Of a stretch of 64,000 nt of DNA, positions 623-62,550 are shown piece by piece. The first letter of the stretch is position 1. Every line of letters begins with the position of its first letter. The stretch comes from Macrostomum hystrix. Taxonomy: Eukaryota; Animalia; Platyhelminthes. The stretch covers positions 4,278,001 to 4,342,000 of the forward strand of contig CATNEN010000007.1 in NCBI GenBank assembly GCA_950097015.1. The letters are read 5' to 3'. The notes below the pieces were generated by a model. The model was not told the origin of the DNA, ran no database searches, and was given only the letters and a program-made list of their open reading frames with translations. The position numbers were made by a program, and so were the translations under genes.

Positions 623-720
623 GCACTAAATTCTACTCTTGATCCAAGGCAGGTGTCAGAAAGTTTAGCATACAAAAGCAAAGCAGGCAAATGCAATAAT
701 TTCATGTTGGAGTTAGTCAC

Positions 721-22285: not shown

Positions 22286-23071
22286 ATATGTCAGTGGCAT
22301 GTCAGTGGTATCTTAAGTACATTTCGTACCGTTTTTAGCCAAAACATTTCCAAATGCACTTTGAATATCCTTTGCCCTCTAGGTCAGAGGGTGGTGTTAA
22401 TTTATGCAGTCTAGAAAGTGAAATTTTATCTAAGTAAATAATTTATCAGAGGTGCATAATATAGCAGAGATAAGACATTTATGTCTGACTCTGAGGGAAA
22501 GTCAGAGGGGCATTGTGAGTGCACTTGGACATAATTCTGTGGGAAATTTTTTTCTTTTAGACTTCCTTTCCAGAGCTTGTTGAAAAGTTTAATTAGTTCA
22601 CCTATTTAAAAAGAAGACTATTTGGATTGAATTTGGATAGTGTCAGTTTCCTGAAAGAGATTGTGATTGAGTTGGACTAAATCAAATCACTCCAGAGCTA
22701 GGAAGAGATATGGGGGGAATGGTCGGGGGCCACGAGGCTTCGCACTGTTCGCGCGTCATTCGGCTGTGTGAGAGATAGAGCTGGCAGCCAATCAGAATGC
22801 AGCTAGAGGCCGGCAGAGAGACAGAAGGTTATCACAGTTCGGAGCTGTGCCAACCCACCCTGTTTGGTTATTAAAAATGAGCAGAAAAATAAGCCCACGG
22901 AGATTCAGAGCTCAAAGAGATTACGGGGCGCACCTGGTTCTCTTATCAGGAAATGGCCCGCCGCCCCGCACGTTGATCAGTCGGCAGAAGCGGCAACCCC
23001 AGCCTTTCCATTCCTATCAGCACCCAAAACTGGCGAGTAAACACTCGAAAGCCTGAAAACTGTCGCCCCAG

Positions 23072-23106
<35 letters not shown>

Positions 23107-23138
23107 ACAAGGAAACAAACAAGCAGTTTCTGTGGATC

Positions 23139-38851: not shown

Positions 38852-40272
38852 GACCGATTAGAAGCAGAAATTCACAATCTGTGGAAGAAAAATAAATTAC
38901 CAGACCTGCTGACTGCGATTCGGAGAATGTTTAAGTAATAAAACTTGTAGCCGCAATCTGATTGGCCAGTTGAAATGGCGACCAATGAGGAGCGGGCGCG
39001 GCTGCCCTCGACGGCTGCACTATCCGGCATTGCGTAGACTAAATATTATTCGGCGGCCGACTAAAAAGATGGCGAATCATTTATGGCCTTTCCTACAGGC
39101 ATAGCCGCTCCCGCCGTGCACTGCATGAACTGCATGTTCAATCCAGCTAGTTTTGTGGGTTCAGCATTGCCGCGGATTTGTCTACTAGCAGGTCGACAAT
39201 GTGGACCTGAGCAATGGCGGGGCGGCTTTCTATTGTCCAGCATCACCTGCACAATGGCCAGCTTGCAGTGAATTTTCCAGTTGACTCCCCGGTCGCAAAA
39301 CCGAAGCCCGAGCCTGAGCAGTGACTGAGCCCGAGTGTGACCGCAGAAAAAGAAGAAAGAAAACTGGAAAAATTCTTCCAGGGGCGAGAGAGACACTTCT
39401 AGCAGACGGAAAACTCGGGGCCAATTTGAAATTAGTATTTCGTCAAAGGACAACTCGAGACCCGATACACAAACACACAAAAGAGTAGCTTAAGCCGGCT
39501 TTCGTCTCACCTAGAATTGCTGACGCATTGTGTTCTTCGAATGGTATTTCTTTTGTAGCTACCAGAACTGTCGAGTGACCCCCCAACCCTGTCTCTCTAG
39601 CCGAGAGTTTTATATCTTACCTGACTTGAGTTCTTTGGACAGCTCAGTCAGCCAGCAACCCCCGAACCCGCCGTGTGAGCTGCGATTCATAAAAAATGCG
39701 TGGAAAAGTCCCAGCACCTGCTGCTGAACTCTGGCAGTGGAGCTGACAGAAGGGAACATTCCATGTGGAAATTCAGACAGACTGCAGCAGCAGCAGCAGC
39801 AGCAGTCATTGTGCTTTCATTTATTTTCTTGAAGCTTTATGCGAGAAAGCATTTTGATTTTCGGGATTATCTGGTCATTGAAAGCCACAGAAGGGAAAAC
39901 AATGCCACAGATACGAAGAATGCCAAGACGACACCGACCCTGTCAATCAACCGGGGGTTGCGGCAGCGGCCGCGGCAGGGACCTGCCTGTCTCTCTCCTT
40001 CACTTTGTGACAGACAAACGGACTGGTAGAGTAGAGGAGGAAAGTCGTAGGAAAATATCCCAAACAGGCATAAGAGAGTTCGTGGGCTAGAGAAACAATG
40101 GTGCACAAAAAACTGACTACAGCTGAAGTGCCGGATACGGGGAGTGACAGCCCAGCACAGGCAGTCGGATAAGGAACAATAAGGCAGGAAATCGGTTAAT
40201 CCCCTCCACAGGTGCGACCGATTTTGAGCACAGGTTGTACTTTTACAGCGATTTTGTTGTTCGGAGGGAGTC

Positions 40273-42325
40273 GAATGGATTGCTAGTCTATACAACTGAT
40301 AAGGGAATAGAATGGATTGCTAGTCTATACAACTGATAAGGGAATAAAATGGATTGCCAGTCTATACAAATGATAAGGGAATAGAATGGATTGCCAGTCT
40401 ATACAAATGATAAGGGAATAGAATGGATTGCCAGTCTATACAAATGATAAGGGAATAGAATGGATTGCTAGTCTATACAACTGATAAGGGAATAGAATGG
40501 ATTGCTAGTCTATACAACTGATAAGGGAATAGAATGGATTGCTAGTCTATACAACTGATAAGGGAATAGAATGGATTGCTAGTCTATACAAATGATAAGG
40601 GAATAGAATGGATTGCTAGTCTATACAACTGATAAGGGAATAGAATGGATTGCTAGTCTATACAACTGATAAGGGAATAGAATGGATTGCCAGTCTATAC
40701 AACTGATAAGGGAATAGAATGGATTGCTAGCCTATACAACTGATAAAGGAATAGAATGGATTGCTAGCCTATACAACTGATAAAGGAATAGAATGGATTG
40801 CTAGACTATGCAACGGATAAGGGAATAGAATGGATTGCTAGACTATCCAACTGATAAGGGAATAGAATGGATTGCTAGTCTATACAACTGATGAGGGAAT
40901 AGAATGGATTGCTAGACTATGCAACGGATAAGGGAATAGAATGGATTGCTAGACTATCCAACTGATAAGGGAATAGAATGGATTGCTAGTCTATTTGAGA
41001 GAAACAGGAATAGAATGGATTGCTAGTCTATCCAACTGATAAGGGAATAGAATGGATTGCTAGTCTATACAACGGATAAAGGAAAAGAATGCATTGCTAG
41101 TCTATACAACTGATAAAGGAATAGAATGGATTGCTAGTCTATACAACTGATAAGGGAATAGAATGGATTGCTAGTCTATACAACTGATAAGGGAATAAAA
41201 TGGATTGCTAGCTTATCCAACTGATAAAGGAATAGAATGGATTGCTAGTCTATGCAAATGATAAGGGAATAGAATGGATTACTAGTCTATTTGACAGAAA
41301 CAGGAATAGAATGGATTGCTAGTCTATACAACTGATAAGGGAATAGAATGGATTGCTAGTCTATACAACTGATAAGGGAATAGAATGGATTGCTAGACTA
41401 TCCAACTGATAAGGGAATATAATTGATTGCTAGTCTATACAACTGATGAGGGAATAGAATGGATTGCTAGCCTATACAACTGATAAAGGAATAGAATGGA
41501 TTGCTAGTCTATACAACTGATAAAGGAATAGAATGGATGGCTAGTCTATGCAACTGATAAGGGAATAGAATGGATTGCTAGCCTATACAACTGATAAAGG
41601 AATAGAATGGATTGCTAGCCTATACAACTGATAAAGGAATAGAATGGATTGCTAGACTATGCAACGGATAACGGAATAGAATGGATTGCTAGACTATCCA
41701 ACTGATAAGGGAATAGAATGGATTGCTAGTCTATACAACTGATGAGGGAATAGAATGGATTGCTAGACTATGCAACGGATAAGGGAATAGAATGGATTGC
41801 TAGACTATCCAACTGATAAGGGAATAGAATGGATTGCTAGTCTATTTGAGAGAAACAGGAATAGAATGGATTGCTAGTCTATCCAACTGATAAGGGAATA
41901 GAATGGATTGCTAGTCTATACAACGGATAAAGGAAAAGAATGCATTGCTAGTCTATACAACTGATAAAGGAATAGAATGGATTGCTAGTCTATACAACTG
42001 ATAAGGGAATAGAATGGATTGCTAGTCTATACAACTGATAAGGGAATAGAATGGATTGCTAGCTTATCCAACTGATAAAGGAATAGAATGGATTGCTAGT
42101 CTATGCAAATGATAAGGGAATAGAATGGATTACTAGTCTATTTGACAGAAACAGGAATAGAATGGATTGCTAGTCTATACAACTGATAAGGGAATAGAAT
42201 GGATTGCTAGTCTATACAACTGATAAGGGAATAGAATGGATTGCTAGACTATCCAACTGATAAGGGAATATAATTGATTGCTAGTCTATACAACTGATGA
42301 GGGAATAGAATGGATTGCTAGAGTA
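40273..42325 (-). repeat. 37-bp satellite array B, reverse complement of array A (27654-28978)
   Basis: + strand unit GAATGGATTGCTAGTCTATACAACTGATAAGGGAATA. Confidence 0.97.
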
Positions 42326-42892
42326 TGCAACGAACACAAGTACAATCAGCCGATCGCATTGTGTGCCTGAAGCATGAGTCAGGTCAAAACAGAAAACTGC
42401 CGGCTATTGAGTTGCCTCGCCAGCTAACCGGGATTTCTTGATTGCCCTAATTTCTGCTGCTTTCCTTATCTATGCTGGATTGTGGTCCGTGCTACAACCT
42501 CTTTAATTGTGCTGAGGGCGGCATTTCACAGAAGAAAATTGCTAGAATAAACAAATAGTTCGGTGTCGGCAGCCACATTATTTGCCATTGAGTTTGAGCT
42601 AATTCAATCAATGCGCTGGTCGTTTGAAAGCTGTTAAAAACAGCAACAGCAGCAGCAGCAACAGAAGCAGCAACTTTGGTGTCACGCATTGTGCGAAAAC
42701 TGCCCGATAAGAGAGATAAGCGGAGAACGCGAGACACCATTTCTCTGCTTTGTTTACCAACTCCTGCGGCAGAGGGCGCTTTTCAATTACGGCTTCTCGA
42801 AGCAGAGGGACTGACTCAAAGTGCGTCGCAATGTCCTTGGACAGCCGGCTATGGAAATAACCGTGGATTAAGGCGAAATTATTGAAAGATAC

Positions 42893-43802
42893 ATCCGACA
42901 GTTTTGAAAAACCCAACAGTTTCCGGGAAATCCGACTGTTTCCGGAAAATCCGACAGTTTCCAGAAATTCCGACAGTTTCGGGAAATCCGACTGTTTGCG
43001 GGAAATCCGACTGTTCGCGGGAAATCCGACTGTTTGCGGGAAATCCGACAGTTTCCAGGAAATCCGACAGTTTCGGAAAATCCGACAGTTTCGGGAAATC
43101 CGACAGTTTCCAGGAAATCCGACTGTATGCGGGAAATCCGACTGTATGCGGGAAATCCGACTGTTTGCGGGAAATCCGACTGTATGCGGGAAATCCGACT
43201 GTATGCGGGAAATCCGACTGTTTGCGGGAAATTCGACTGTATGCGGGAAATCCGACTGTTTGCGGGAAATCCGACTGTATGCGGGAAATCCGACTGTATG
43301 CGGGAAATCCGAATGTTTGCGGGAAATCCGACTGTTTGCGGGAAATCCAACTGTTTGCGGGAAATCCGAAAGTTTCCAGGAAATCCGACTGTTTGCGGGA
43401 AATCCGACTGTTTCCAGGAAATCCGACTGTTTCCGGGAAATCCGACAGTTTCCAGGAAATCCGACAGTTTCCAGGAAATCCGACAGTTTCCAGGAAATCC
43501 GACTGTTTCGGGAAATCCGACTGTTTGCGGGAAATCCGACAGTTTCCAGGAAATCCGACAGTTTCCAGGAAATCCGACTGTTTGCGGGAAATCTGACTGT
43601 TTGCGGGAAATCCGACTGTATGCGGGAAATCCGACTGTTTGCGGGAAATCCGACAGTTTCCAGGGAATCCGACAGTTTCCAGGAAATCCGACAGTTTCCA
43701 GGAAATCCGACAGTTTCCACGAAATCCGACAGTTTCCAGGAAATCCGACAGTTTCGGGAAATCCGACTGTATGCGGGAAATCCGACTGTTTCCAGGAAAT
43801 CC
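42893..43802. repeat. 19-bp minisatellite GGAAATCCGACWGTTT(CCA/GCG)
   Basis: Visible unit; explains the REIRLF/ISWKLSDF ORFs. Confidence 0.93.
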
Positions 43803-44282
43803 ATAAGCAACCTCTTCTCTCAATAGCATCAAAAGAAATCGGAAAACTTAACAGCCTGGGGAATTTGACCAGTTTTGGAAGTCGACAGACTGAAAAAGAA
43901 AGATAAATAGAGAAGTAAATTTTTGCTTGCTGCAGACTCGAAGAACACAGCGAGTTTAGCACGACCTCCATCTTATCAACAAAGACTATTCTCTTTAATT
44001 GTTGCATTGATATAAAAACTAGTTGACACGCCACTGTAAGATATGACAACACTGACACAAAACACAAAATATGCGTTCTAAATAAAATGTTTCATTAAGA
44101 AATGCAGCACAGAGGACAGGATCAATAGCTGTATATGGACGATCGACTCATAAAAACAGATGGCTATTCAGATTGACAAGCACAGAGAGAGGGAATGATT
44201 AGAAAAATATTCGCATGACAAAAGTCACAACACCAAAAATTGAAACAGTTTAATTCGATAAACAATTGCAAATGTAAATAAA

Positions 44283-44482
44283 CTACCTACCTAACTGCCT
44301 ACCAACCTACCTACCAACCAACATTCCAACCTACCTACCAACCTACATACCTATCTACCTACCAACCTACCTACCAACCAACATTCCAACCTACCTACCA
44401 ACCTACATACCTATCTACCTACCAACCTACATACCTATCTACCTACCAACCTACATACCTATCTACCTACCAACCTACCTAC
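44283..44482. repeat. Degenerate (CCTA/CCAA)n simple repeat
   Basis: Directly visible. Confidence 0.85.
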
Positions 44483-44483
44483 C

Positions 44484-44736
44484 AGCGGTGAGGTCACATT
44501 AATTTGGGGCGCAGCCGCGGAGAGAAGGCTTGGGGGCTTGTCGTGCAATTTACGCCACTGAGGGACAACCTCCAAGGCACAGTGAGAGTGTACACTGCCT
44601 GACGATGAGAAAGTCAGGGCAGATGTACACACCTGTGTGTGTGTGTGCTCAGGAGTCAGCGGAACGGGCAGACTTGCCGCCTCGCTGGCAACTATAGTCA
44701 AATGATGCGCCACTGCTCACAATCACCTGCAAATAT
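44484..44736 (+). mobile_element. SINE-like family A copy (5'-truncated)
   Basis: GTGAGGTCACATTAATTTGGGGCGCAGCCGCGGAGAGAAGGCTTGGGGGCTTGTCGTGC... closely matches 36541-36760. Confidence 0.8.
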
Positions 44737-45197
44737 TTCGAGGTTACAATCTTATTTACCTATTTTTACCTTTAAATTCTTATCTAGTACTCAAACTCGA
44801 ATATATTTAACACAGTGTGTTGAAAAATACAAAATATTTACAATCTCATTGGTGTCGTTAAAGAGAACAGCTGAAAAGCGACTAGAAAAAAGTTCCGGGT
44901 TTGATTTGGAATGCAAAAAACTAGAAACTCAGATGAGATGAGAACAACACAGTTTTCGAGGCAGAGGAAATCGCAGACACGGACTCGATTAAACACATGT
45001 AAGATAGAACCAACATAACACACTGGACAGCTATGATACTAGTTAGTTTGCGATTTAGACGCAGAAAAATGGTACAAGACTTCACAATGCAGATATCAGC
45101 AATAAAAATATTCTGTGGCAAGAGGACACAGAGACAGATGCGACATGCTGAGAGACACCTAAATGAGGTTGGGGATTCGGAAATTGGGGGAATGAAA

Positions 45198-46470
45198 TGG
45201 GATAAGAAAGTACAGGGCAGATGGGATAAGAAAGTACAGGGCAGATGGGATAAGAAAGTACAGGGCAGGTGGGATAAGAAAGTACAGGGCAGATGGGATA
45301 AGAAAGTACAGGGCAGATAAGATAAGAAAGTACAGGGCAGATGGGATAAGAAAGTACAGGGCAGATGGGATAAGAAAGTACAGGGCAGGTGGGATAAGAA
45401 AGTACAGGGCAGGTGGGATAAGAAAGTACAGGGCAGATGGGATAAGAAAGTACAGGGCAGATGGGATAAGAAAGTACAGGGCAGATGGGATAAGAAAGTA
45501 CAGGGCAGGTGGGATAAGAAAGTACAGGGCAGATGGGATAAGAAAGTACAGGGCAGATAAGATAAGAAAGTACAGGGCAGATGGGATAAGAAATTACAGG
45601 GCAGATGGGATAAAAAGTACAGGGCAGGTGGGATAAGAAAGTACAGGGCAGATGGGATAAGAAAGTACAGGGCAGATGGGATAAGAAAGTACAGGGCAGA
45701 TGGGATAAGAAAGTACAGGGCAGATGGGATAAGAAAGTACAGGGCAGATGGGATAAGAAAGTACAGGGCAGATGGGATAAGAAAGTACAGGGCACATGGG
45801 ATAAGAAAGTACAGGGCAGATGGGATAAAAAGTACAGGGCAGGTGGGATAAGAAAGTACAGGGCAGATGGGATAAGAAAGTACAGGGCAGATGGGATAAA
45901 AAGTACAGGGCAGGTGGGATAAGAAAGTACAGGGCAGATGGGATAAGAAAGTACAGGGCAGATGGGATAAGAAAGTACAGGGCACATGGGATAAGAAAGT
46001 ACAGGGCAGATGGGATAAGAAAGTACAGGGCAGATGGGATAAGAAAGTACAGGGCAGATGGGATAAAAAGTACAGGGCAGGTGGGATAAGAAAGTACAGG
46101 GCAGATGGGATAAGAAAGTACAGGGCAGATGGGATAAAAAGTACAGGGCAGGTGGGATAAGAAAGTACAGGGCAGATGGGATAAGAAAGTACAGGGCAGA
46201 TGGGATAAGAAAGTACAGGGCAGATGGGATAAGAAAGTACAGGGCAGATGGGATAAAAAGTACAGGGCAGGTGGGATAAGAAAGTACAGGGCAGATGGGA
46301 TAAGAAAGTACAGGGCAGATGGGATAAGAAAGTACAGGGCAGATGGGATAAAAAGTACAGGGCAGATGGGATAAGAAAGTACAGGGCAGATGGGATAAGA
46401 AAGTACAGGGCAGATGGGATAAGAAAGTACAGGGCAGATGGGATAAGAAATTATAGGGCAGATGGGGTAA
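45198..46470. repeat. 24-bp minisatellite (GGGATAAGAAAGTACAGGGCAGAT)n
   Basis: Visible unit with 23-bp variants. Confidence 0.96.
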
Positions 46471-46617
46471 GAATGTAGCGGGGAGATGGGACAGGAAATG
46501 TCTAATTCTTATCCCGTAGATGTAGCAGAGCAAGTCAGGTGTTGTGGTTGAAGCGGAGGATGGCAGCTCAGACCGGCAGTTGATTGACAGCTGCAAATTG
46601 CCAGAATCTTAGTCAGC

Positions 46618-49422
46618 TCAGCCAGCCGGCAAATCAAAGGCCAGCACCGGCTGCTGCCGAGTGTCCAGCAGGTCGGCGATGATCCGGTGCCAAGGCAGCG
46701 ACACGTAGGTGAGGCAGGCGTTCAAGGACGCGGAGCTGGCCCTTCGGCGCTCCTTGAACCAGTGCCAGGCCTGGCCGAATGAGCGGCCGACCTGCCAGAT
46801 GCTGGCTCCGATGCTGCCGCCACCGACACCGCTAGCCGAGTCGACTTCAGTCGTCGAATCTTCTGGCTCGTCGCCGAATTCTTCCTCGATGGCACGAGCG
46901 TCAACTTCGCTAGCTGGTCGGCGACGCCGGCCGGAGCCGACGAAATTCGGGCGGCGACTGACGGCGCAGCCGGTCGTGTCGATGTTGGCCGAGTCCGACC
47001 GCGACTTCTTCATGCCGCCGCCTCCGCCGCCGCCTCCTCCGCTGCCAAAGCCGCCGGAAAGTCGTCGCTCTCGCCGACGCCTAGAATCATCGTCGTCGAC
47101 GTCGTCGCCGCAGGCGGATTCCGGCGCGGCAGTCACCGCCACCTCGGCGTGACCTTTGCCGTGCGGCCCACGCATGCGCAGGAATACCAACCGGCGACCG
47201 GAAGCGGCGCGGAAGCTGCCGCCGCCGACACCTCCGCTGGCCCTGGCCTGATAAACCTCCAGCACCGACTCATAGCGAATGCTGCCCAGGAACAGCACTC
47301 CCTGCAGTGCGGGGGATTGGCACTACACTTGTAACACTGTAACATTCAGGTGCCGCAATCAACATTCAGGTGTCACTATCAACATTCAGGTGTCACCATA
47401 AACATTCAGCTGTCACTATCAACATTCAGGTGTCACTATCAACATTCAGGTGTCACCATAAACATTCAGGTGTCACTATCAACAAGCAGGTGTCACTATT
47501 AACATTCAGGTGTCACCATAAACATTCAGGTGTCACTATCAACAAGCAGGTGTCACTATCAACAAGCAGGTGTCACAATCAACAAGCAGGTGTCACTATC
47601 AACAAGCAGGTGTCACTATCAACAAGCAGGTGTCACAATCAACAAGCAGGTGTCACTATAAAAACGCAAATGACACGCAAAGCCCACCTGCAGGCGGCCC
47701 CGTCTGTCGCAGGCCACGAGCTCCACGCAGAGCAGCTCGGAGTCGCGCAGGACGCAGTCGGCAAACAGATCCTCATAGTTGTGCACGCTGAAGAAGATGT
47801 TAGGATAGGCGATCTCCTCCTGGCTGGCCTTGCCGTCCATGCTGTGCCGGCTGGGGCTGGCGAACACGCGGCTGGTGAATCGGCGCAGGATCTGCAGCTC
47901 CCGGGCGCCGGTGCGGGTGCAGACGGCGCAGGTAACAGTGTAAGCAAACTGCTGCATGATGAGGTTCAGGTAGACACTCTCCTCCAGGTCAACCAACTGG
48001 TCAGCCAGGATCAGGCGGTAATTGTGCTGGTGCTTGCGATGCACCTGCGACAGATATATAGAGATAGAGTAGAGAGATAGAACAAGTGTCACAGCCGCAT
48101 CCAAAGGCTGAGAATAGCTGTCCAGTCCATGGACTTAAGACACCAACCTTCATTTCTTTCCCAGCTGATGCTGGCACCAATTTTACAACTGAATGAACTG
48201 AAGCACTAAAGAATTAATGGGCTGAGATTCGAACCGCCGACCTTTCAGTCCACAGTCCTCTAACCACTAAGGCTACAAGCTGCATCTGCGAGAGAATGGA
48301 CAAATTACGGGGGGGAGAGTAACTCTCTTGCAATAAACCGATGCACTTAAAGGCTAAAGTGCAGTCACCTGATTCAAAGTACCCATGGGAAGGTGACTGG
48401 CATACAATAAAGAGATTCTTATCTTGAAATAACATCCAAAAAGTACTGCAAGTACTCGAGGCTCGAGGCGGCGCAGTCGCAAAATCACGCAGCAACAGCA
48501 GCAGCAGATGACGCACCATGCCGCCTGACAACCTAGCGAAATGGATACTTTTGTCCCATGAAAATAAAACTGATGCTGCGTCTGGGGCCCTTCAATATCC
48601 CCATTTAATCTAAAATCCCTTATTCTGTAATCCCCACCCACTCTGCAATCCTTGTCCATTCAGTAATATCCCAAGTCATTCTGTTATATTATAATCCATT
48701 CTGAAATATCCCTATCCAGTCTGTAAAATCCCGATCCATTCTGTAATATCCCGATCCATTCTGTAATATCCCGATCCATTCTGTAATATCCCTATCCATT
48801 CTGTAAAATCCCTATTCATTCTGTAAAATCCCTATCCATTCTGTAAAATCCCTATCCATTCTGTAAAATCCCTATTCATTCTGTAAAATCCCTTTTCATT
48901 CTGTAAAATCCCTATCCAGAATGTAAAATCCCTATCCATTCTGGAATATCCCTATACAATCAGCAACATACCTTTCTATCCCCTACTCCCACGCAGAAGG
49001 CTCACCTCCACGGTGGTGCCCGCCGCGGCGCCGGCAGCTCCTGATGGGTCTCCCCGCCGGCGCCGCACGTAGAACACCAGGTCGTCCTTAAACTCGTCCG
49101 CAGGCAGAACGCCCGGCCCCTCGCCGCTGTCCTCTAGAAAGTGCTGCACCAGCAGCTGGCTCCAGAACTTGTTTCTAGGCGGCCTCGGCTGCTGCTGCAA
49201 GGAAGAAGACTTGCTGGAAGCAGAAGACCGCCGCTCCACCGAGATGGACGCCAGGATGCGCTGCAGGGAGCTGCTGCGGCTCATCCGGTCCGCCTCTGAG
49301 TCGCCGTCTTTTCCAGCTCCAGCTTCGTCGTCATTGTCGGGCAGCTCGGCTTCCAGAAGATCGTCTGAGTTGCTGCCGTCGCTGGCGCAAATGTTGAAAC
49401 GAACCGGAGCGCTGGTATCCAT
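46618..49422 (-). CDS. KIAA0930: KIAA0930 (DUF2045) homolog, 3 coding exons, about 485 aa
   Basis: Exons 49422-49006, 48044-47688 and 47301-46618, all phase 0 with GT-AG boundaries. Motifs recognised from KIAA0930: DDLVFYVRR, EESVYLNLIMQQFAYTVTCAVCTR, VFASPSRHSMDGK, YPNIFF, LCVELVA, GSIRYE, RMRGPHGKGHAEVAV, LTYVSLPWHRII. Confidence 0.9.
47340..47660. repeat. 20-bp minisatellite (AACAWKCAGGTGTCACTATC)n filling KIAA0930 intron 2
   Basis: Visible unit. Confidence 0.92.
48100..48282 (-). mobile_element. Second tRNA-derived SINE-like element (family B) in KIAA0930 intron 1
   Basis: Minus strand reads GTAGCCTTAGTGGTTAGAGG (A-box-like)...GGTTCGAATCTC (B-box), with no complete cloverleaf, followed by CTTCAGTTCATTCAGTTGTAAAATTGGTGCCAGC, loosely CORE-domain-like. 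Left boundary is approximate. Confidence 0.55.
48675..48955. repeat. 20-bp minisatellite (CCTATCCATTCTGTAAAATC)n in KIAA0930 intron 1
   Basis: Visible unit. Confidence 0.9.
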
Positions 49423-49713
49423 GGCAACAGCGGAGCGGGGGACCGAGCCGCGGCTGGAATTCGAGGTTGGAGAAAGCTGTCTAGAAGAGTAAAAAACGAA
49501 ACTAACGGAATTAGTACGAAAAATAATGAAAGAAACGGAAATATATTAACGAAAGTGCTGAATTTCGGTTACTAAAAGTATCGAAACCATTTTAACAGAA
49601 AAAACAAAAATAAACGAAATAAGCTAATAGAAACTAGAAGAAACAAGCGAAAAAAACATAAAGTTACCGGGCATTAAATTCAATTAACGCTACTGCAAGT
49701 AGAAACCGCGGCT

Positions 49714-49719
49714 TTTATT
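49714..49719 (-). terminator. Candidate polyadenylation signal AATAAA for DTWD1
   Basis: TTTATT on +, about 120 nt downstream of the DTWD1 stop (49840) and about 235 nt upstream of the KIAA0930 acceptor. Confidence 0.55.
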
Positions 49720-49839
49720 CAGTAGTTTGAAGTTTAATGCAAAACAGTGAGAGTGCAGCACACGATCCTAACCTAGAAATGCAAGCATAAAAATGTTTTA
49801 AAGCTGAATTAATCGACAAAATTGGCGTCACATCAAGCA

Positions 49840-52049
<2,210 letters not shown>

Positions 52050-52350
52050 CTGCAGTGCTTACAGTCCTGCGAGCAACAATTTCCTTTTTAAGGAAAAAAT
52101 AATGATCAAACGGTAACTAGAGGAAATGCGAAACAGCTACTAGGCTTTCATCCTCGGAAATAAGTGGCAAAACGCAACAAAGATTTATTAGCGAGCAAAG
52201 GAAATGCAAAGATGCAAGCGCAAGGCAGAGCATTACCAGTAGCAAATAATAGTACTATACTAATGTAGCACATTTGCAGGATCAATAAATATTACTGGCT
52301 ACTAGTATAGTGCTGGAGCTCTACGCATCAGTGAGTATTAATTAACGGCA

Positions 52351-52356
52351 TTTATT
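52351..52356 (-). terminator. Candidate polyadenylation signal AATAAA for TMEM42 (second candidate at 52184-52189)
   Basis: TTTATT on +, between the TMEM42 stop (52615) and the DTWD1 acceptor (52050). Confidence 0.5.
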
Positions 52357-52467
52357 TATAGGAAAGACATTGCGTGTAGTGCATTACACTACTGTTGTTC
52401 AGCACAGGTGCAACCCAATTATCTATTAGGGAGAGCTGCCAAGCACATTTCATTGCATTCTACTCTC

Positions 52468-52590
52468 TCCCATTCTCCCTGTCTACTCACCCATTCTCCC
52501 TGTCTACTCCCCCATTCTCCCTGTCTACTCCCCCATTCTCCCTGCCTACTCTCCCATCCTCCATGAATCTCCCATTCTCCCTGAATCTCT
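52468..52590. repeat. 21-bp repeat (CCCATTCTCCCTGTCTACTCC)n in the TMEM42 3' region
   Basis: About 5 imperfect copies. Confidence 0.75.
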
Positions 52591-52614
52591 CAAACATCCA
52601 GCTGCAGGCCGTTT

Positions 52615-53016
52615 TCAGTCAGTCTTTTCCACTGCAACCGTCAGCTCCTTTTCGCTCCGCTGCGTCTCCCGGCAGGCGATGAAGAATCCGGCCAGGATGA
52701 GACCGGAGCCGGCCAGCCAACGCGGCCCGACCGGCTCGCCGAAGACCAGAAAGCCGGCGAGGCCGGACAGCAGAAAATTGGCCGCGGCGTTGATCAGGGT
52801 GGCCCGGGCAGCAGAGCCGCAGGCGTGCATGGCACGGACAAACATCGGCCACATGGCCGCGTTGCAGGCCAGCCAAGCGGCCGCTGCGGCAAGGCCGGCC
52901 GGCCAATCAGACTGGCCAATGGCCGAGCCCGCCAGCTTGCCGGCCAAGGAGGCGCCCGCGGCAGCTGCGCCAGACAGAATGGCCCACAGAAATGGCGGCG
53001 GCTGAGACTTGGACAG
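52615..53016 (-). CDS. TMEM42: TMEM42-like 4-TM DMT/EamA-type small membrane protein (133 codons from the acceptor; no ATG of its own at the 5' end)
   Basis: Acceptor CTACTTTTCCAG at 53017 is followed in phase 0 by LSKSQPPPFLWAILSGAAAAGASLAGKLAG...NAAMWPMFVRAM...ANFLLSGLAGFLVFGE...WLAGSGLILAG, which matches the TMEM42 pattern. Confidence 0.8.
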   Translation of the reverse strand: MSKSQPPPFLWAILSGAAAAGASLAGKLAGSAIGQSDWPAGLAAAAAWLACNAAMWPMFVRAMHACGSAARATLINAAANFLLSGLAGFLVFGEPVGPRWLAGSGLILAGFFIACRETQRSEKELTVAVEKTD

Positions 53017-53094
53017 CTGGAAAAGTAGGCAATGGAAGCTTCTTGTTGATGGAATCGGGATCGGGAGTTTGAGAGGATGGGATTTGAACCTTGA

Positions 53095-53285
53095 GCGTAT
53101 GGGATCTGAAGTTTGGGATGGGATCTGGACTTTGGGATGGGATCTGAAGTCTGGGATGGGATCTGAAGTTTGGGATGGGATCTGAAGTTTGGGATGGGAT
53201 CTGAAGTTTAGGATGGGATCTGAAGTTTGAGAAGATGGGATCTGAGATTGGGATGTGATCTGGAGATTTGGTGGATGGGATCTGA
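53095..53285. repeat. 19-bp minisatellite (GGGATGGGATCTGAAGTTT)n
   Basis: Visible unit just upstream of the TMEM42 acceptor. Confidence 0.88.
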
Positions 53286-55085
53286 ATTTTAGGATAGTAA
53301 GGGCCATTTAGAATTGTGAAGGTGGGATAAATTTGTTTTGAGATTTTGTGGCAAAGTATGAGTATGAAAAAATCAATTCAAATCAAATATATTGCAAATG
53401 TAGATCATTGTGACATTTATTAAATATTTTTTTGCTAGCTTGATCTGAAAGTGAGTGCATACTAGCTATGAGCCCATATTAAACTATGGAAAAAGTATAT
53501 CAATAGCAACATTCATATTTTGTTTCAATAATTGTCAACAACCTGTTCGAAGAGCTCAAGAATTAATTTTATGGCACTATGTTTATAGTGAAGGCTTAAC
53601 TGAACAAACTTGTCTTAATGACTTTACTGTCCTCTAATTATAAATGAGTCATAAAAAATATATAATTTCAGGATGAGATATTCTAGTCTAATATTGTGCT
53701 ACAATATATATAAAAAAATAAAAAATATATAGTATATAGAATACTAGAATATGAATTCGAAAATGGGAAAAAAGTGAAAATAGAAATGTGAATGTGCATT
53801 TGTTTCTTTAGAAGCTAGCTATACTTCTATTAACTCCTTCATTATTTGTGGGATACAGAAGGATCACCCCAAGTATTTTATCTATCCACTTTTGGATTTT
53901 TTTTTATTTTAGCAAATAAGGTTATTAATTGCATAGGGGCAGGGGTATGGACTAAAGTGACATTACTGATTGGGTAGATATTTTAGTGAAACAATTGGAA
54001 ATATAGTAAATTATAACTTTTCTAGAAAACTGGATTACTGGTTTATTAGTTTTTACTTTCTAAAATTCATACATATAAAAATTACTTCTTTTTTATGGAC
54101 TAATTTTACTTGTGAAAGAAGCTGAATGTTTTATTCGAAAAAAAGCTGGAAAAAGAACAATGAAATAACCACTCAAATTTTTTCAAATTTTCTCTTATAC
54201 TCATTTTTTGCTAAATAACTGCGAAAGAAGCTCAAAAATAATATTGACTAGACTAACATAAAGACTCTCCCTGAAGTAAAAGATAACGCGTTAAAAAATA
54301 ACAAGCATAAAGTATACTAATCCATAAACCAAAAGAACCAAAGAAAACCAAATATACTTATCAATGCTATACTTTCTTATAAAAATTATGTCTTAAAACT
54401 GAATAAAATCCCAATGAACAATTCAGAAAATAGTCAGCTAGTTTTAAAGCAAAACGCCTGTTTTTTCTCCTACACACTTTATTTTATTTGAACTATACAG
54501 GATCAAATGAAAGAAGTTTCAAGGATTTGTTTATCTGATTTACCACGATAACTTTTAAGAATATCTTTTTCTTAGATAAAGTACCGAGTCCAATCGAACG
54601 AAAATGGGTTAAATACATTCAACAACAGTAATATTTTAGACCCAATGTATCAAAAATAACTTGCCAGGAGAAATTCAGCAATTATGTATTCGCGACCTAC
54701 TCGCGACCTAAAATAAGGTTTTGATTTTGATTTGCTACCCAGAGTTCTACTTATTTTTGAGTCTTGTTACTTTCTGCAGCCAGTTCAATTGACAACATTC
54801 CCAGGATGTCTTCTATGCAAATGTGAAATTGCGGTTGCTACTTGCTACAAAGCTATTTTTGAGGTAAGAAATGTTAAAATAGCTCAGTGGTTCGGTCAAT
54901 TCTAGTAATCTATATATAGTTTGCCGGTGTGAACGAAGTAAGTGAGAATCCAGCATTTAAAGTTTTAATAGTAAAAAAATGCGAAATCAGGGTACTTTGC
55001 AATCTGGAAGTTTAGCTACTTTTCCATGTTGCGCCTCTTAAGATAAATTTTGTGAATAGTGCATATCTTTCTCGTTCTCACAGCT

Positions 55086-58000
55086 ATGGAACCGATTTCT
55101 GAGCAAGGCCTTAATGTTAAGGCCACAGCGCAGTATTTCTTGGATAACATGGCGTCAATATTCCAGGTAAGTGATTCTCAAGTAGATATTTAATTCCTGC
55201 ATGCTTTATAAATATCTTGCTGATGCAGCTGAAAAGTGCAGGCGGGTTTCGAATACTGAAATCCGACACAAACTTAAATTTAAATGACTAGCTCGCATTA
55301 ATCTGCCTGCCGAGCAGGTACCCCCGGTGGGAATACAAACGAAAGCGGATTAAGGCTTTATGCCAGACGGATTAGTTCACGGGTGGAGTGGAAAATTCGG
55401 CGGGGGCGGAGTGAGTGCTTTCACCCAGAAACAGCGCGCTCCGTCCTCGCCTACTCGCTCTGCAACTCCCTCCCTGTGCATGCTCTGCGTGAGTAAGTCA
55501 GTAATGATCCCCAATACAGAAAACGCAGCAGTGCATTCATGCTTCCGTGATATCTGCTCAGCTCCCTGCACTGATGTGATCAGTAACAGACTCACCGATT
55601 TTTTTCAGATAGCCTCTGCTTTTTTGCTTTCCCATTGCTGGAAGCTTTAGCAAGGCTTTTGGAACCCCCTTTATGCACATGTACATATATATTTGGAACC
55701 CCCTTTATGCACTTGTACATATATATTTGGAACCCCCTTTATGCACATGTACATATATATTTGGATGTTGCTATAAACGGACACAACGACTAAGCTAAAA
55801 CTAGGAGAGCTGATTTTTAAGGATCCTTAGAACTTATTTTACAGAAACCTCTGTCCCCTCCGTCTGTCCGTTTTTCGCTCTCAGATTTGAGCATTCAGGC
55901 AGCATCCTGTTTGACAGTTGCAGCAGCAGGAGTGAAAAGAAAGTCTCTTTCCCCCCCATCGGTATTTTCTTCCTCCATCGATGTACTTCTCGCATTTTCT
56001 GCGCAAGCTTCTTGTGTGTGTGCATGTGTGTGTGTGTGTGTGACATATGAAAGAAAAGCTATAAGCATCTGAAGCTGCACTTTACTTGCAAGCTTCTGCC
56101 CATACTTTACCTAGTGAGCTGGGGCACTAATAGAATATCACCCGCTAATAGCTTTTCATATGTCGTGTACTTTTAGCTGGTCATGTTATTCTAATGGTTT
56201 TATTCCTTGCCTTAGAGGCATTTATCGAACTTTTAGCGTGAAAGATGTCCAATTTGCTGAATAATTATATCGCTACTAATGTACGTTTGCTCTCATGATA
56301 TACATCGCTGATTGATGAATTCCAACCTGCGCAAAGCCAGCACCCTTGCGTCACAGGGCAGTTTTTTATTTTTAGCCTGCCAAATTGCTCGTGTTATATT
56401 ACAGCTCGTATTACAGCCTTATCAGTAGAAAGACCCTATTGGCATTTTAAATATACCCTCATTTTTATTTTTTTCTGCATCTCCCAAAATATTCAACCAA
56501 TCACATTAAAAATCCAGACCTCAGTAGTAGGAACTCCACCCGTGAAGTAGGAACACCCTTGTGATCTTTCCGCAGGGGGAAACTAGCGAGTTCCTTCTAC
56601 TGTTAACGTGTTTTGCTGTCTGTTTCTCTTCGCAGAAACTGACCAATGGCGGCAGCAGCCGGGCCAACGGCGCCAACAGCTGGGGCTACGGCAGCGAGAA
56701 CGGTGAGGCACTGGTTGAGCTGCTGCTCTTGTCAAAGTACGCTGGCGGCCCTAGTCAGACAGAATTTTGTCAAGGGAGTCGCAGACAAGGCCTACAGAGC
56801 CTGGGAAGTCCCGCACAGCAGCTCATTAGTGACTGGCCCCATCTCCCTGGCCTTTTCCCCGTGCGCCAAACCCCCATGCACTCAGCTAATTGGACTGGAG
56901 AATCTAATTTGTTTGAATGCTCGCAGAAGCAGGGCCCTCCTTCGAGTCCGCGCCGCGGTCCTGGAAGGGCAGAGAGAAAAGTGGAAATGAAAAGCCGGGA
57001 CTGACCGCTGCCAGGGGCTTTGCTCGGGCGAGTGTTGCAGAAATGATGAAAAAAACTTTCCGCCCTACATCTCTCGCCATCAATCCTTCGCTCTCAATCC
57101 CTCATCTAAATTCCTTGTTTTTTTATCTCTCGCCATCAATCCGTCACACTCGCCATCGAACCATCTAGTCCTCAGATTTCCAAGCGCTTGTCCTCGCCCT
57201 CGCCCTCGCCCTCGCCCTCGCCCTCGCCCTCGCCACCCAAAAACCGAAGGCCATGGGATCCCCGCAGGGCCGCACACGTGGAGCCGTCAGTTCCCGTTAG
57301 CCGCTGGCAGCTCGCAGTCGCCAGTGCATGTGGAATCCCAGCGCGCCGTCCACTCGCCAGAGCTGACGGTCCGGCCGCTGACTCTGCGGCAGCCGCCGAT
57401 GCCTGGGTGCCTGCTGAGCAACACGGGCGTCGGTTTTCAGGTCAGCGCGCCAGCCGACGATGGAAGCGTGTCGATGGCTGAGTCGTCGGTGGCAGGTGAG
57501 CTGAGACTCGTTGAGATTAAACATTTTTCCCTCCAAAATCTTCCCACTGCAGCACCTCAGAATAGCGATTTCGATCCCCTTATTCCATCCCAGCCACAGC
57601 CAGCCGCCAAACAGCTCGATACATTCCCATCCCCGAAACTGCTCCGGCGATCGATAAATGAGATTCAGCTGCATCTGGCCAGGAACTCAAGGGGAATTGG
57701 GGAGGTGAATATTGGAGAGAACGGGTGATAATGGGGTGAGAATGGGGTGAGGATGGGGTGAGGATGGGGTGAGAATGGGGTGAGAATGAGGTGAGAGTGG
57801 GGTGAGAATGGGGTGAGGATGGGTTGAGAGTGGGTGAGAATGGGGTGAGGATGGGGTGAGAGTGGGTGAGAATGGGGTGAGAATGGGGTGAGAATGGTGC
57901 GTGAGGGGTGAGAAATCACTAGCATTAAGAGCTATTGTGTTTGAGTATGACTAGAAGTTTAGATTCACATTTAAGATGGTGGGGAAGATGAAGCGTGGGA

Positions 58001-60351
58001 ATTGAGGGCAGGGCAGGCGATAGTGGAAGTCCGTGCTCAAGTCCAAAACAAAATTTCCTTTCTAGTCGCGGTCACCGCTAGTGTGTGACCGGCCATCACG
58101 CGCGGCCGAGGCGGTGGAGCAGGAAATTGTGTGACTGGCAGGGGAGGTCTCGGTCTCATCGATCAGGCTTGCGGACTCGGGGTCAGTTGGGGAGACGAAA
58201 TCTGCACCCACCGATCCACGCGGTGGCAGATAAAAGTGCAGCTGAGGACTTCTGAGCTTCATCAGCGAGTGGGTGCACTCGTATTCCTTGTCCAGTTTGT
58301 CTTCCCGCAGTTCCCCAGTTTTATCCCAGAGCTACTTTTTCCCCAGGGTTCGATAGAGCCAGCTCAGGATGTCTGGATGAAGTGAGTTGGGAACATGAAG
58401 GACCACTTCAAAAGTTGAATTTAAGCATCTGAAAAGCTAGCTTTGAGACTCCATTACCGCAGCCCTTTGCTTTTAATTAAATTTCAGTCCTGTCTCCGCA
58501 CTGCTATATTTAGCGACTTAAGTGCTCAAGATTTAGTGCACTTTTCAGAGGATTTCAGAGGAAATCCGAGGATTTCAGTTTTAAAAGGGTGAACCAGAGT
58601 ATGAGGTGAGAATGAGGTGAGAGTGGGGTGAGAATGGGGTGAGGATGGGGTGAGGATGGGGTGAGAACGGGGTGAGAGTGGGGTGAGAATGGGGTGAGAG
58701 TGGGGTGAGAATGGGGTGAGGATGGGGTGAGGATGGGGTGAGAATGGGGTGAGAGTGGGGTGAGAATGGGGTGAGGATGGGGTGAGGATGGGGTGAGGAT
58801 GGGGTGAGGATGGGGTGAGGATGGGGTGAGGATGGGGTGAGGATGGGGTGAGAATGGGGTCAGAGTGGGGTGAGAATGGGGTGAGAATGGCGTGAGAATG
58901 GGGTGAGAATGGCGTGAGAATGGGTGATGATTGGGTGAGGATGGGGTGAGAATGGGGTGAGAGGGGGTAAGAATGGGGTGAGGATGGGGTGAGGATGGGG
59001 TGAGAATTGGGTTAGAATAGGGTGAGGATGGGGTGAGGATGGGGTGAGAGTGGGGTGAGAATGCGGTGAGAATGGGGTGAGAGTGGGGTGAGAGTGGGGT
59101 GAGAATGCGCTCACAGCTCACGGATTCTCAGTGAATCAGAGTGATTATCACAGCTCACGGAAGTGAATCAAAATCTTGCATATTCCCCAGCCAAATCTCC
59201 CTATCTGCCCACAGGAATCGATGGCGGCCCACTGAACTGGCCGCACGAGTTCGCCCAGTTCCACATGCACTGGGGCGCCTGCGACACCGCTGGCAGCGAG
59301 CACGCCATGGATGGTCGGCTGTACCCGGCCGAGCTGCATCTCGTTCACTGGTGCCGCGCCCGGCACGCCAACTTTGATGTCGCCGCTTCGGCCGGCTCCG
59401 GCGCCGGCGATCGTCTCGCCGTGCTGGCTGTGTTCGTTGAGGTGAGCAACGTATTGCACCGCGATACAGCTATAAAATAGCAAAGTTTACTAACTATAAG
59501 TTACTGCTATTAGTAACATAGTTAGCGCACAATGCTCAAAACTCAAAGCAATTGCATCCGAAATGCGGCTGTGCGCAGATTGGCCAGGCAAACGCAGAGC
59601 TAAACAAGATACTGACGAACTTCGACCGCATCAAGGCCACCGACTCGCCAAGTTTTATGCTGCCTACGCCTGTAAACCTGAGCGGTCTGATGCCATCCAA
59701 CACGGCAGAATATTTCACCTATGCTGGCTCGCTGACAACTCCTCCGTGCTACGAGTCTGTGCGATGGATTGTATTCCGGCAGCCAATCAGCATCAGCAGA
59801 GAGCAGGTTCGTTACATAATACGAATTCGTTACATAATACTCGTAGGACAGCCAGCCAATCAGCTGAAGCAGGCTCTACCAGACTGAAATCAGCAATCAC
59901 CAGCAAATCATCAGCAATCACCAATCAGCAACTGGGAAAGTCGTTCCAGTTATTCCGAAGTTGAATGTGGCAGCCAATAAGCAGAGGGCTGTAGATTTTT
60001 GGTAGTTTGCTCCAGCCAATAATCGAATGATTATAGTCTGGAGTCGATTGCGACAGCCTATAAGCAGACATTTTAAGAGAGTTGAGTGTGGGCAGAGATA
60101 CAGCGCCAACCAATAAGCGAAAATGTTAGGATATCGGAAGCGAATAGCTGTTCAGAATTGTTTCAATGTTGGTTTAGCAAAACCTAAATCTGTGCCGAAT
60201 TTCGCAGCTCCGGTCCCTGCGCACCCTGGATAGCAACCGAGGCCGAGTCGGCTGCAAAACGGTGGACAATTACCGGCATCTGATGCCGCTGGGCACGCGG
60301 CAGTTGCTAGTCTCGCAGAGGCCCCAAGCCGCTAATGACAAATCGCCATGA
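55086..60351 (+). CDS. Alpha-carbonic anhydrase, probably cytosolic, 6 exons, 324 aa (303 aa from the second ATG at 55149)
   Basis: Phase-consistent exons 55086-55166 (least certain), 56636-56702, 57268-57495, 59215-59441, 59579-59806, 60208-60351. Motifs: WGY..ENGP..W, QSPV, QFHMHWG (two Zn His), GSEH, ELHLVHW (third Zn His), [27 protein letters not shown]. Confidence 0.93.
55659..55764. repeat. 34-bp tandem triplication (TTGGAACCCCCTTTATGCACATGTACATATATAT)
   Basis: Three head-to-tail copies with no spacers. Confidence 0.9.
57190..57233. repeat. (CCTCGC)n hexanucleotide microsatellite just upstream of CA exon 3
   Basis: Directly visible. Confidence 0.9.
57722..57912. repeat. 11-bp G-rich minisatellite (GGGGTGAGRAT)n, block 1 in CA intron 3
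   Basis: Visible unit. Confidence 0.9.
58603..59108. repeat. 11-bp G-rich minisatellite (GGGGTGAGRAT)n, block 2 in CA intron 3
   Basis: Same unit and orientation as block 1. Confidence 0.92.
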
Positions 60352-61944
60352 GTTTGAGAATAGATCTTAGAATTTCACACTTCAAACTTAGTTTCTGAGC
60401 AGTAATTGAGCACCTCAAGTAGTGATTAGCACACACTTTAATTTGTTACCGAATGCATTTTGCTGTACTCTGAGCCGGAGAGTAACACTTAGTACATAGT
60501 TTATTAATGATTCCTGTCAATACGATGTGATTTGCACTTTCTCTTCCAATATTGAGACCCCCAAACCAATACATAGCGACAGTTTGAGTTCATGTACTCA
60601 AATCCCTAGCATTTTTCCTCAAGCGAATTACTTTTTATTACTATTTTGTTTCGTCCTACCCAAAGCATGTGTGTCATATTTTACTCAATTTAGCAATCAA
60701 ATATCAAAAAGTACTCGTAGCTGCAGTAGATACGAGCGTATATTTCTTCAAATAGTTACTGTAGCAAAATATACTTTTTTACACACAAGATTTCTCTAGG
60801 CGATCACAGGCGCAATCAATACGAGGCGACTGACTTAAAGCTTTAAATGCCAAAACAGGGGAAAACTGACAAACATGCCAGAGTGACAGTAAACGGCGAG
60901 AGTAACTATGGCTCATCACTAAAAGCCAGTTGCCTCGTCATCTACTATTTCTACTCTTGTAAAGTGCTTCAATTGAAAACAGCAACCAGAAACGCAGAAG
61001 ACGTTTACCGGCCGCAGGGGAATTTCTGCTACAAGGTTTGAAGGAAACAATGTCAGCCTAGCTCGTGTTTATTTTATGCCCAGCCTAGGGAGGCAATTAT
61101 AGATACCTCAGAATCACTACGAACTGCTACAGTAGTAAAATAAGCATAGCATTTTTACAACACAAGAAACAGACTACTGATAAGTAGTAGCGAGGCAGCC
61201 GACAGCAAACTGGCGTAAAACAAATGTCTCAGGTTAAACAAGCGGAAGATTAGCTCTGTAACATTTGCTCCTTATTCACTGCCTAAACTAGAATGCCTTG
61301 CTACAGACAGACAACAGCATCTAAGTAAATTAACTAAGGGAGCTAATCTCTGACTAATGTATCAGAAACAAATAACATCAAATTTTAAAAGGCTGGAACT
61401 GAAGAGAATATGAATATGCTCATTATTCTACTGACACACTGTCAGTAGTGCAGTTTGCTCATTGGTGTGCAAAGCGCACAGTCATCTGTAAAGAAAAATC
61501 AAGAACAAAACTTCTGAAAATTTGCAGGATTAGGAATTCGGAAATTGAAATTCTCCATATTATGCACTTTTTGGTGAAGAAAAAACAAAATAAGCACAAT
61601 GTGCGTCGAAAATCTCTACAAAGCAAATCAGGGAGCCACAGGCAAATCAACTGTTTGCAAATCAAAACTATGAGTATGTTAAGCGATTTAAGCAAGGGCG
61701 ACTAGAATGCACACAAAACTAACGAGGCGCGACTATGCCACCATTAATGGGAAACCTAGATCTTGCAGCACTACTGACTAGTACATTTTTCTGAGTAAGC
61801 AATCGAAATCAATCTGCCACTAAGCCTGTCTTGCCGCAGTTAAAAATTATCTTTTTAAGTTTTTTATAGTATTCTGAAAAGCAAGAAACCAGTAAAAATA
61901 GCCATGGAGTGGGCGATTGCTATGGGTGACAAGCGGAGTGAGAT

Positions 61945-62550
61945 TGGTTGTTGGTTGAGTGAGATGGGTGGTTGGCGGAGTGAGGTGGGTGATTTGTGGA
62001 GTGAGATGCGTGGTTGACGGAGTGAGGTGGGTGGTTGGAGGAGTGGATTGGGTGATTTGTGGAGTGAGGTGGGTGTTTGGTGAAATGAGGTGGGTGGTTG
62101 GCGGAGTGAGGTGGGTGATTTGTGGAGTGATGCGTGGTTGACGGAGTGAGGTAGGTGGTTGGAGGAGTGGGTTGGGTGATTTGTGGAGTGAGGTGGGTGT
62201 TTGGTGAAATGAGGTGGGTGGTTGGCGGAGTGAGGTGGGTGATTTGTGGAGTGATGCGTGGTTGACGGAGTGAGGTAGGTGGTTGGAGGAGTGGGTTGGG
62301 TGATTTGTGGAGTGAGGTGGGTGTTTGGTGAAATGAGGTGGGTGGTTGGTGGAGTGAGATGGCTGATTTGTGGAGTGGGATGCGTGGTTGACGGAGCGAG
62401 GTTGGTGGTTGGAGGAGTGAGGTGGGTGATTTGTGGAGTGAGGTGGGTGTTTGGTGGAATGAGGTGGGTGGTTGGTGGAGTGAGATGGGTGGTCGGCGGA
62501 GTCAGGTGCGTCGGGTGGATGTAATCGATAGTGGACTGAGGTGGGTGATG
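61945..62550. repeat. Degenerate GT-rich repeat (GGAGTGAGGTGGGTG core) with longer-period blocks
   Basis: Recurrent core visible. Confidence 0.85.

Follow-up and report, generated by a model that had tools for sequence, protein, structure and literature searches.

We analysed a 64,000-nucleotide (nt) stretch of Macrostomum hystrix DNA (assembly GCA_950097015.1, contig CATNEN010000007.1; hereafter the window, whose own positions are used throughout), in which the minus strand at 46618-53016 carries three genes head-to-tail, TMEM42-like, DTWD1 and KIAA0930 (DUF2045). A reading made from the letters of the window (the sequence-only reading) had proposed that the trio is an operon resolved by spliced leader (SL) trans-splicing. 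The three genes lie where that reading placed them, as borne out by open reading frames (ORFs), Pfam matches and stop codons (TGA at 52617-52615, 49842-49840 and 46620-46618, in the order of the genes). No opposite-strand gene intervenes between members of the trio, and the distances are short: from each stop codon to the next acceptor in use there are 583 nt (TMEM42-like to DTWD1, at 52031) and ~385 nt (DTWD1 to KIAA0930), which replace the 565 and 360 nt given at first. Both intercistronic gaps hold the AATAAA hexamers that had been reported, at 52356-52351 and 52189-52184 in gap 1 and at 49719-49714 in gap 2, the earlier coordinates being those of the final hexamer bases. The features of the trio are as follows.

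52615..53016, minus strand: TMEM42-like gene, single coding exon of 133 codons plus stop, defined by frame and acceptor
52032..52614, minus strand: gap 1, 583 nt, 3' untranslated region (UTR) of TMEM42 and intercistronic region
51421..52031, minus strand: DTWD1 exon 1, Pfam DTW
50212..51420, minus strand: DTWD1 intron, GC-AG
49650..50211, minus strand: DTWD1 exon 2, coding sequence 50209-49840 and then 3' UTR, Pfam DTW
49455..49649, minus strand: T-rich spacer within gap 2, ≤196 nt, without RNA contig in any of the four runs
49006..49453, minus strand: KIAA0930 exon 1, 5' end set by SL trans-splicing between 49454 and 49453
47688..48044, minus strand: KIAA0930 exon 2, DUF2045 core, Pfam E=1.3e-40
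46618..47301, minus strand: KIAA0930 exon 3, stop at 46620-46618, followed by a 1.3 kb minisatellite of 24-nt units

Protein and domain searches were run exon by exon, and Macrostomum lignano was represented by assembly GCA_002269645.1 with its two homeologous loci, L001 and L002. The label TMEM42-like comes from ESM-Atlas neighbours named 'Transmembrane 42-like' or EamA at 0.93-0.94. Pfam gave no match on this ORF, and a word search returned a DMT-like permease as its sole match and no Macrostomum protein. DTWD1 exons 1 and 2 show 66% and 82% amino acid identity, respectively, to M. lignano tRNA-uridine aminocarboxypropyltransferase 1. Pfam DUF2045, the KIAA0930 family, was found in all three KIAA0930 exons, of which exon 2 is 92% identical to M. 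lignano at the amino acid level. Gap 1 also holds a 21-nt minisatellite at 52465-52589 (TRF).

Spliced-leader joins and start codons

RNA came from four runs of one 2020 study (X19 to X22), in which 51-59% of the sampled words were present; the remaining 18 of the 22 returned runs, with ~6-7% of words, were taken as microsatellite noise and ignored. Nearly the whole DTWD1 intron is a 1.18 kb (CTGY)n array, that is (CTGC/CTGT)n (50237-51415, TRF), and this intron is cleanly spliced out in all four runs, which are therefore RNA. At 50211 the loose contig end corresponds to 51452-51423, and the intron is accordingly of the GC-AG type, with a GC donor. Contig placement covered 48960-50232, comprising gap 2 and its flanks; gap 2 was chosen because the DNA letters by themselves say nothing on trans-splicing of KIAA0930.

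Contigs from X19 and X20 follow the genome up to 49454 and then continue for 22 further letters, whose reverse complement together with the shared G exactly matches the 3'-terminal 23 nt of the 35-nt M. lignano SL (PMC8629364). The leader is joined to KIAA0930 at AATTCCAG followed by CCGCGG, between 49454 and 49453, and the exon starts at 49453. The source organism thus trans-splices a spliced leader, as the sequence-only reading had presupposed, and does so at KIAA0930, a leader-bearing contig being present in each of two RNA runs. One of these contigs represents a variant, with six differences; the site thus serves two alleles or copies. The acceptor first proposed for KIAA0930, TCTTCTAG followed by ACAG (between 49481 and 49480), exists in the DNA but was rejected, since the leader contigs join 27 nt downstream of it. 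The predicted leader was therefore found on KIAA0930, though not at 49480. In M. lignano, the homologous acceptor is AATTTCCAG followed by CCGC, where the annotated transcript starts. The U-rich tract described upstream of KIAA0930 is also present, gap 2 being 45% T overall and 60-65% T in 49660-49600.

The joint between KIAA0930 exons 1 and 2 was recovered in X20 and X22 contigs, and the gene has its own ATG at 49422. The AUG of the leader is not in frame with the start of KIAA0930 in either species, the 5' UTR measuring 31 nt here and 35 nt in M. lignano (L002:13955-13992). On this transcript the leader AUG would open an overlapping upstream ORF unless skipped. An X21 contig joins exon 1 to an alternative exon at ~48532 within intron 1 (48501-48532, minus strand). 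For a tRNA-like stretch at ~48220-48290 in the same intron, ARAGORN calls no tRNA.

At the 5' end of DTWD1, contigs in X19, X20 and X22 all reach exactly 634 nt beyond the exon 2 junction in the 5' direction; exon 1 (52031 to 51423) accounts for 609 nt of this length and leaves 25 extra nt. An assembly graph with k=31 keeps ~23-25 nt of a leader common to thousands of transcripts. The 25-nt extension, deduced by length arithmetic, matches such a remnant and is accordingly read as a partial leader joined at 52031. Gap 1 contains an alternative acceptor, CACTGCAG between 52050 and 52049, in frame with DTWD1; its use would leave only 7 extra nt, for which there is no natural explanation. The 3' ends of the DTWD1 contigs lie at 49668 in three runs and at ~49650 in X19, 46-64 nt beyond the AATAAA of gap 2, with no A-run at the end; such contigs cannot map poly(A) sites. 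At 49668, X19 shows an allelic difference, apparently an allelic bubble.

Two of the three genes appear to depend on the leader for their start codon. TMEM42-like begins in phase 0 directly after the acceptor TTTTCCAG, and an in-frame ATG appears only past the second membrane helix (TM2), which points to the AUG that ends the spliced leader as initiator. DTWD1 exon 1 likewise begins in phase 0 after the acceptor TGTTCCAG, and its frame holds no ATG ahead of the CxxC motifs of the DTW domain. Both frames open immediately after TTCCAG, which fits the [T/C]TNCAG trans-splice acceptor motif of M. lignano (PMC8629364). Since both lack a usable ATG of their own and start in phase 0 at TTCCAG, they would need the leader-final AUG. 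We strongly infer that the TMEM42-like and DTWD1 transcripts carry the leader; judged from the reading frames, both would be translated from the SL AUG, an early AUG of their own being absent and phase 0 falling at the acceptor.

Comparison with Macrostomum lignano and the surroundings of the trio

The coding DNA of the trio is 72-88% identical to L001/L002, and the proteins are 59-92% identical. TMEM42, DTWD1 and DUF2045 follow one another on one strand in both L001 and L002, and the suggested search for synteny in a related species thus returned the same gene order twice. In M. lignano, gap 1 measures 864 nt in L002 and 2974 nt in L001, and gap 2 measures 1495 nt in L002 and 999 nt in L001, including a minisatellite of 0.7-1.2 kb. 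These gaps are mostly minisatellite, leaving ~0.5 kb in gap 1 and ~0.26 kb in gap 2. An AATAAA lies ~210 nt ahead of the M. lignano DTWD1 acceptor, and the annotated 5' ends of DTWD1 and KIAA0930 coincide exactly with CAG acceptors. M. lignano TMEM42 (L002, 8742-9136) likewise lacks an ATG and begins in phase 0, and M. lignano DTWD1 retains an ATG as the second codon past the acceptor.

The M. lignano annotation bears on whether the genes share a precursor. Its 'transcriptional units' are assembled precursor mRNAs, with SL and poly(A) signals as the points of division between genes. The two DTWD1 copies are named BOX15_Mlig027472g2 and Mlig011284g2, each being gene 2 of its unit, which suggests that in both cases the assembled precursor contained one or more genes ahead of DTWD1 and supports a precursor common to TMEM42 and DTWD1.

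Some observations concern TMEM42 in M. lignano itself. The C-run after the TMEM42 acceptor is one base shorter in L001 (L001:6625-6660 vs L002:8735-8770), which would put the leader AUG out of frame with TMEM42 and may reflect a homopolymer assembly error or a decaying homeolog. The ATG-less TMEM42 ORF is uncalled in the M. lignano GenBank annotation, and the NCBI gene calls L002:9222-9587 and L001:7132-8451 fall inside a ~21-nt minisatellite of the TMEM42 3' UTR.

The other recognisable genes of the window lie kilobases apart, as the sequence-only reading had remarked. They and the region upstream of the trio are listed below.

716-967, minus strand: nuclear-receptor (NR) C4 zinc-finger exon
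22977-25832, plus strand: SLC26 sulfate-permease/STAS ORF, 952 codons uninterrupted
30386-38857, minus strand: transporter-like ORFs, no Pfam match
53017..57266: promoter/outron candidate region, between the TMEM42 acceptor and the first carbonic anhydrase coding exon
57267-62075, plus strand: alpha-carbonic anhydrase gene, Carb_anhydrase from ~57267, head-to-head with the trio

Within 53017-57266 we found no minus-strand coding ORF and no blastn conservation with M. lignano; a 19-nt minisatellite occupies 53057-53295, upstream of the TMEM42 acceptor (TRF). The 4.2 kb that separate the trio from the carbonic anhydrase gene may hold divergent promoters. On the other side, 40265-46498, between KIAA0930 and the next minus-strand gene, contains ~4.4 kb of minisatellites with 37-, 19-, 12/24- and 24-nt units. 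A scan of the window at Rfam gathering thresholds gave no match, and no SL RNA gene was found in the window with ≤3 mismatches allowed.

Operon or independent transcription

The operon criterion used in Macrostomum is a repeat-adjusted distance of <1 kb between trans-spliced genes (PMC8629364). The trio is an operon by the published Macrostomum criteria, with its genes on the same strand, a trans-spliced downstream gene, and both gaps below 1 kb after adjustment for repeats. A study of parasites used a stricter limit of ≤300 nt. That the three genes in fact form one SL-resolved operon has, in our estimate, a probability of roughly 0.6. Of the operon as first proposed, the layout, the leader on KIAA0930 and the spacing have held, but the KIAA0930 acceptor was wrong and no contig bridges gap 2 in the four runs.

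In the proposed mechanism, RNA polymerase II would initiate at some point within 53017-57200 and produce one precursor that contains all three genes. Each cistron would then be freed by 3'-end cleavage and polyadenylation after an AATAAA, and the single SL would be joined to a [T/C]TNCAG-type acceptor 130-260 nt past the AATAAA, at 53016, 52031 and 49453. The leader-final AUG would supply the start codon of TMEM42-like and DTWD1, and KIAA0930 would use the ATG that it has 31 nt past the acceptor. The poly(A) sites are inferred, as are a precursor common to the trio and a single promoter; the earlier placement of the promoter at 53300-55000, within 53017-57200, is only a guess.

Several results weigh against a single three-gene precursor. 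No contig lies in or bridges 49455-49650 in any of the four runs, even though X19 holds the unspliced edge of KIAA0930 intron 1; such a hole is no proof. M. lignano KIAA0930 (Mlig018646g1) belongs to a separate unit. About 60% of trans-spliced M. lignano genes lie outside operons. Furthermore, collinearity with M. lignano extends upstream to the divergent carbonic anhydrase gene (exons vs L002:3-4653); because this gene is collinear as well, the conserved order does not point specifically to an operon and was given less weight.

In a hybrid arrangement, TMEM42-like and DTWD1 would share a precursor, and KIAA0930 would be driven chiefly by a separate promoter, located within the DTWD1 3' UTR and the T-rich spacer or overlapping them, with a short outron that is trans-spliced off. 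We consider this arrangement unlikely. It would explain why M. lignano DTWD1 is g2 of a multi-gene unit and KIAA0930 g1 of another, and it agrees with the lack of a bridging contig in the four runs, with the 0.7-1.2 kb minisatellite in M. lignano gap 2, and with the KIAA0930 ATG, which makes that gene independent of the leader AUG. However, only ~196 nt remain uncovered between DTWD1 RNA and the KIAA0930 acceptor, and the repeat-adjusted ~0.26-0.39 kb lies in the operon distance mode. The break between units is itself of a kind known as an assembly artefact: according to the authors, units often break in repeat-rich intercistronic regions (PMC8629364), and the M. lignano gap on the KIAA0930 side is repeat-rich.

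Alternatively, the trio may be three independent, tightly packed genes, each with a compact promoter and an outron, that yield trans-spliced monocistronic transcripts. Most trans-spliced M. lignano genes are non-operonic, no precursor was seen among the gap 2 contigs, and the synteny of neighbouring genes is conserved anyway, all of which would suit such genes. Against this, DTWD1 is g2 at two M. lignano loci, which implies that precursors of two or more genes were assembled there; the spacers of ~130-200 nt past the poly(A) signals leave scant room for promoters; and the gene distances belong to the short mode, by which operonic pairs are told apart from non-operonic ones. We regard full independence as improbable and retain the three-gene operon as the preferred reading.

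A broader claim would be that the operon is conserved across Macrostomum lineages, with two consecutive cistrons obligately dependent on the leader AUG and the genomic ATG of DTWD1 lost; we hold the chances for and against it to be about equal. In one study, an operon counts as conserved only if its second gene shows SL evidence in two species (PMC12582326). If true, the trio would offer a natural snapshot of start codons passing to the spliced leader. One by-product would be that annotation pipelines miss or mis-call such genes, the uncalled M. lignano TMEM42 ORF being an example.

Relation to known systems

With the trio, a genus whose operons are deduced mostly from distance gains one more candidate, for which the leader was observed directly at one gene and an acceptor was corrected. 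It also provides what are probably two clean cases of ORFs translatable only from the leader AUG, and it exposes an annotation problem, in that the M. lignano GenBank annotation calls ORFs within the TMEM42 3' UTR minisatellite instead of the TMEM42 ORF.

C. elegans operons are reportedly treated by Blumenthal & Gleason (in 2003). The trio resembles them in its short U-rich spacer and its functionally unrelated housekeeping genes and, as proposed here, in a polycistronic precursor resolved by coupled 3'-end formation and trans-splicing. It differs in that downstream cistrons of nematodes receive a dedicated SL2, whereas in Macrostomum a single SL serves every position; KIAA0930, a downstream cistron, bears this ordinary leader. 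Leader identity in Macrostomum therefore cannot mark operon membership.

Passages in PMC12582326 and PMC9851317 cite Cheng et al. 2006 for the 3'-terminal AUG of flatworm SLs as initiator methionine. As in those cases, the leader here ends in AUG, and TMEM42-like and DTWD1 stand in phase 0 at the acceptor without an AUG of their own. KIAA0930 departs from this pattern, its leader AUG being out of frame in both species.

The closest counterparts are the SL trans-spliced operons of M. lignano (Wudarski et al. 2017, PMC5730564; Ustyantsev & Berezikov 2021, PMC8629364), which hold an estimated 15% of its genes and for which only one SL has been reported, 35 nt long and ending in ...TTGCATG (PMC8629364). 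The trio shares with them a leader with identical last 23 nt, the [T/C]TNCAG acceptor, co-oriented conserved genes, sub-kilobase repeat-adjusted spacing, minisatellites that inflate the intercistronic regions, and orthologues in the same order. It differs in belonging to another Macrostomum species, with DTWD1 at 66-82% amino acid identity and the DTWD1 ATG lost. The type of arrangement has already been described in M. lignano, and the trio is a sound but ordinary example that leaves the known picture of flatworm gene expression unchanged.

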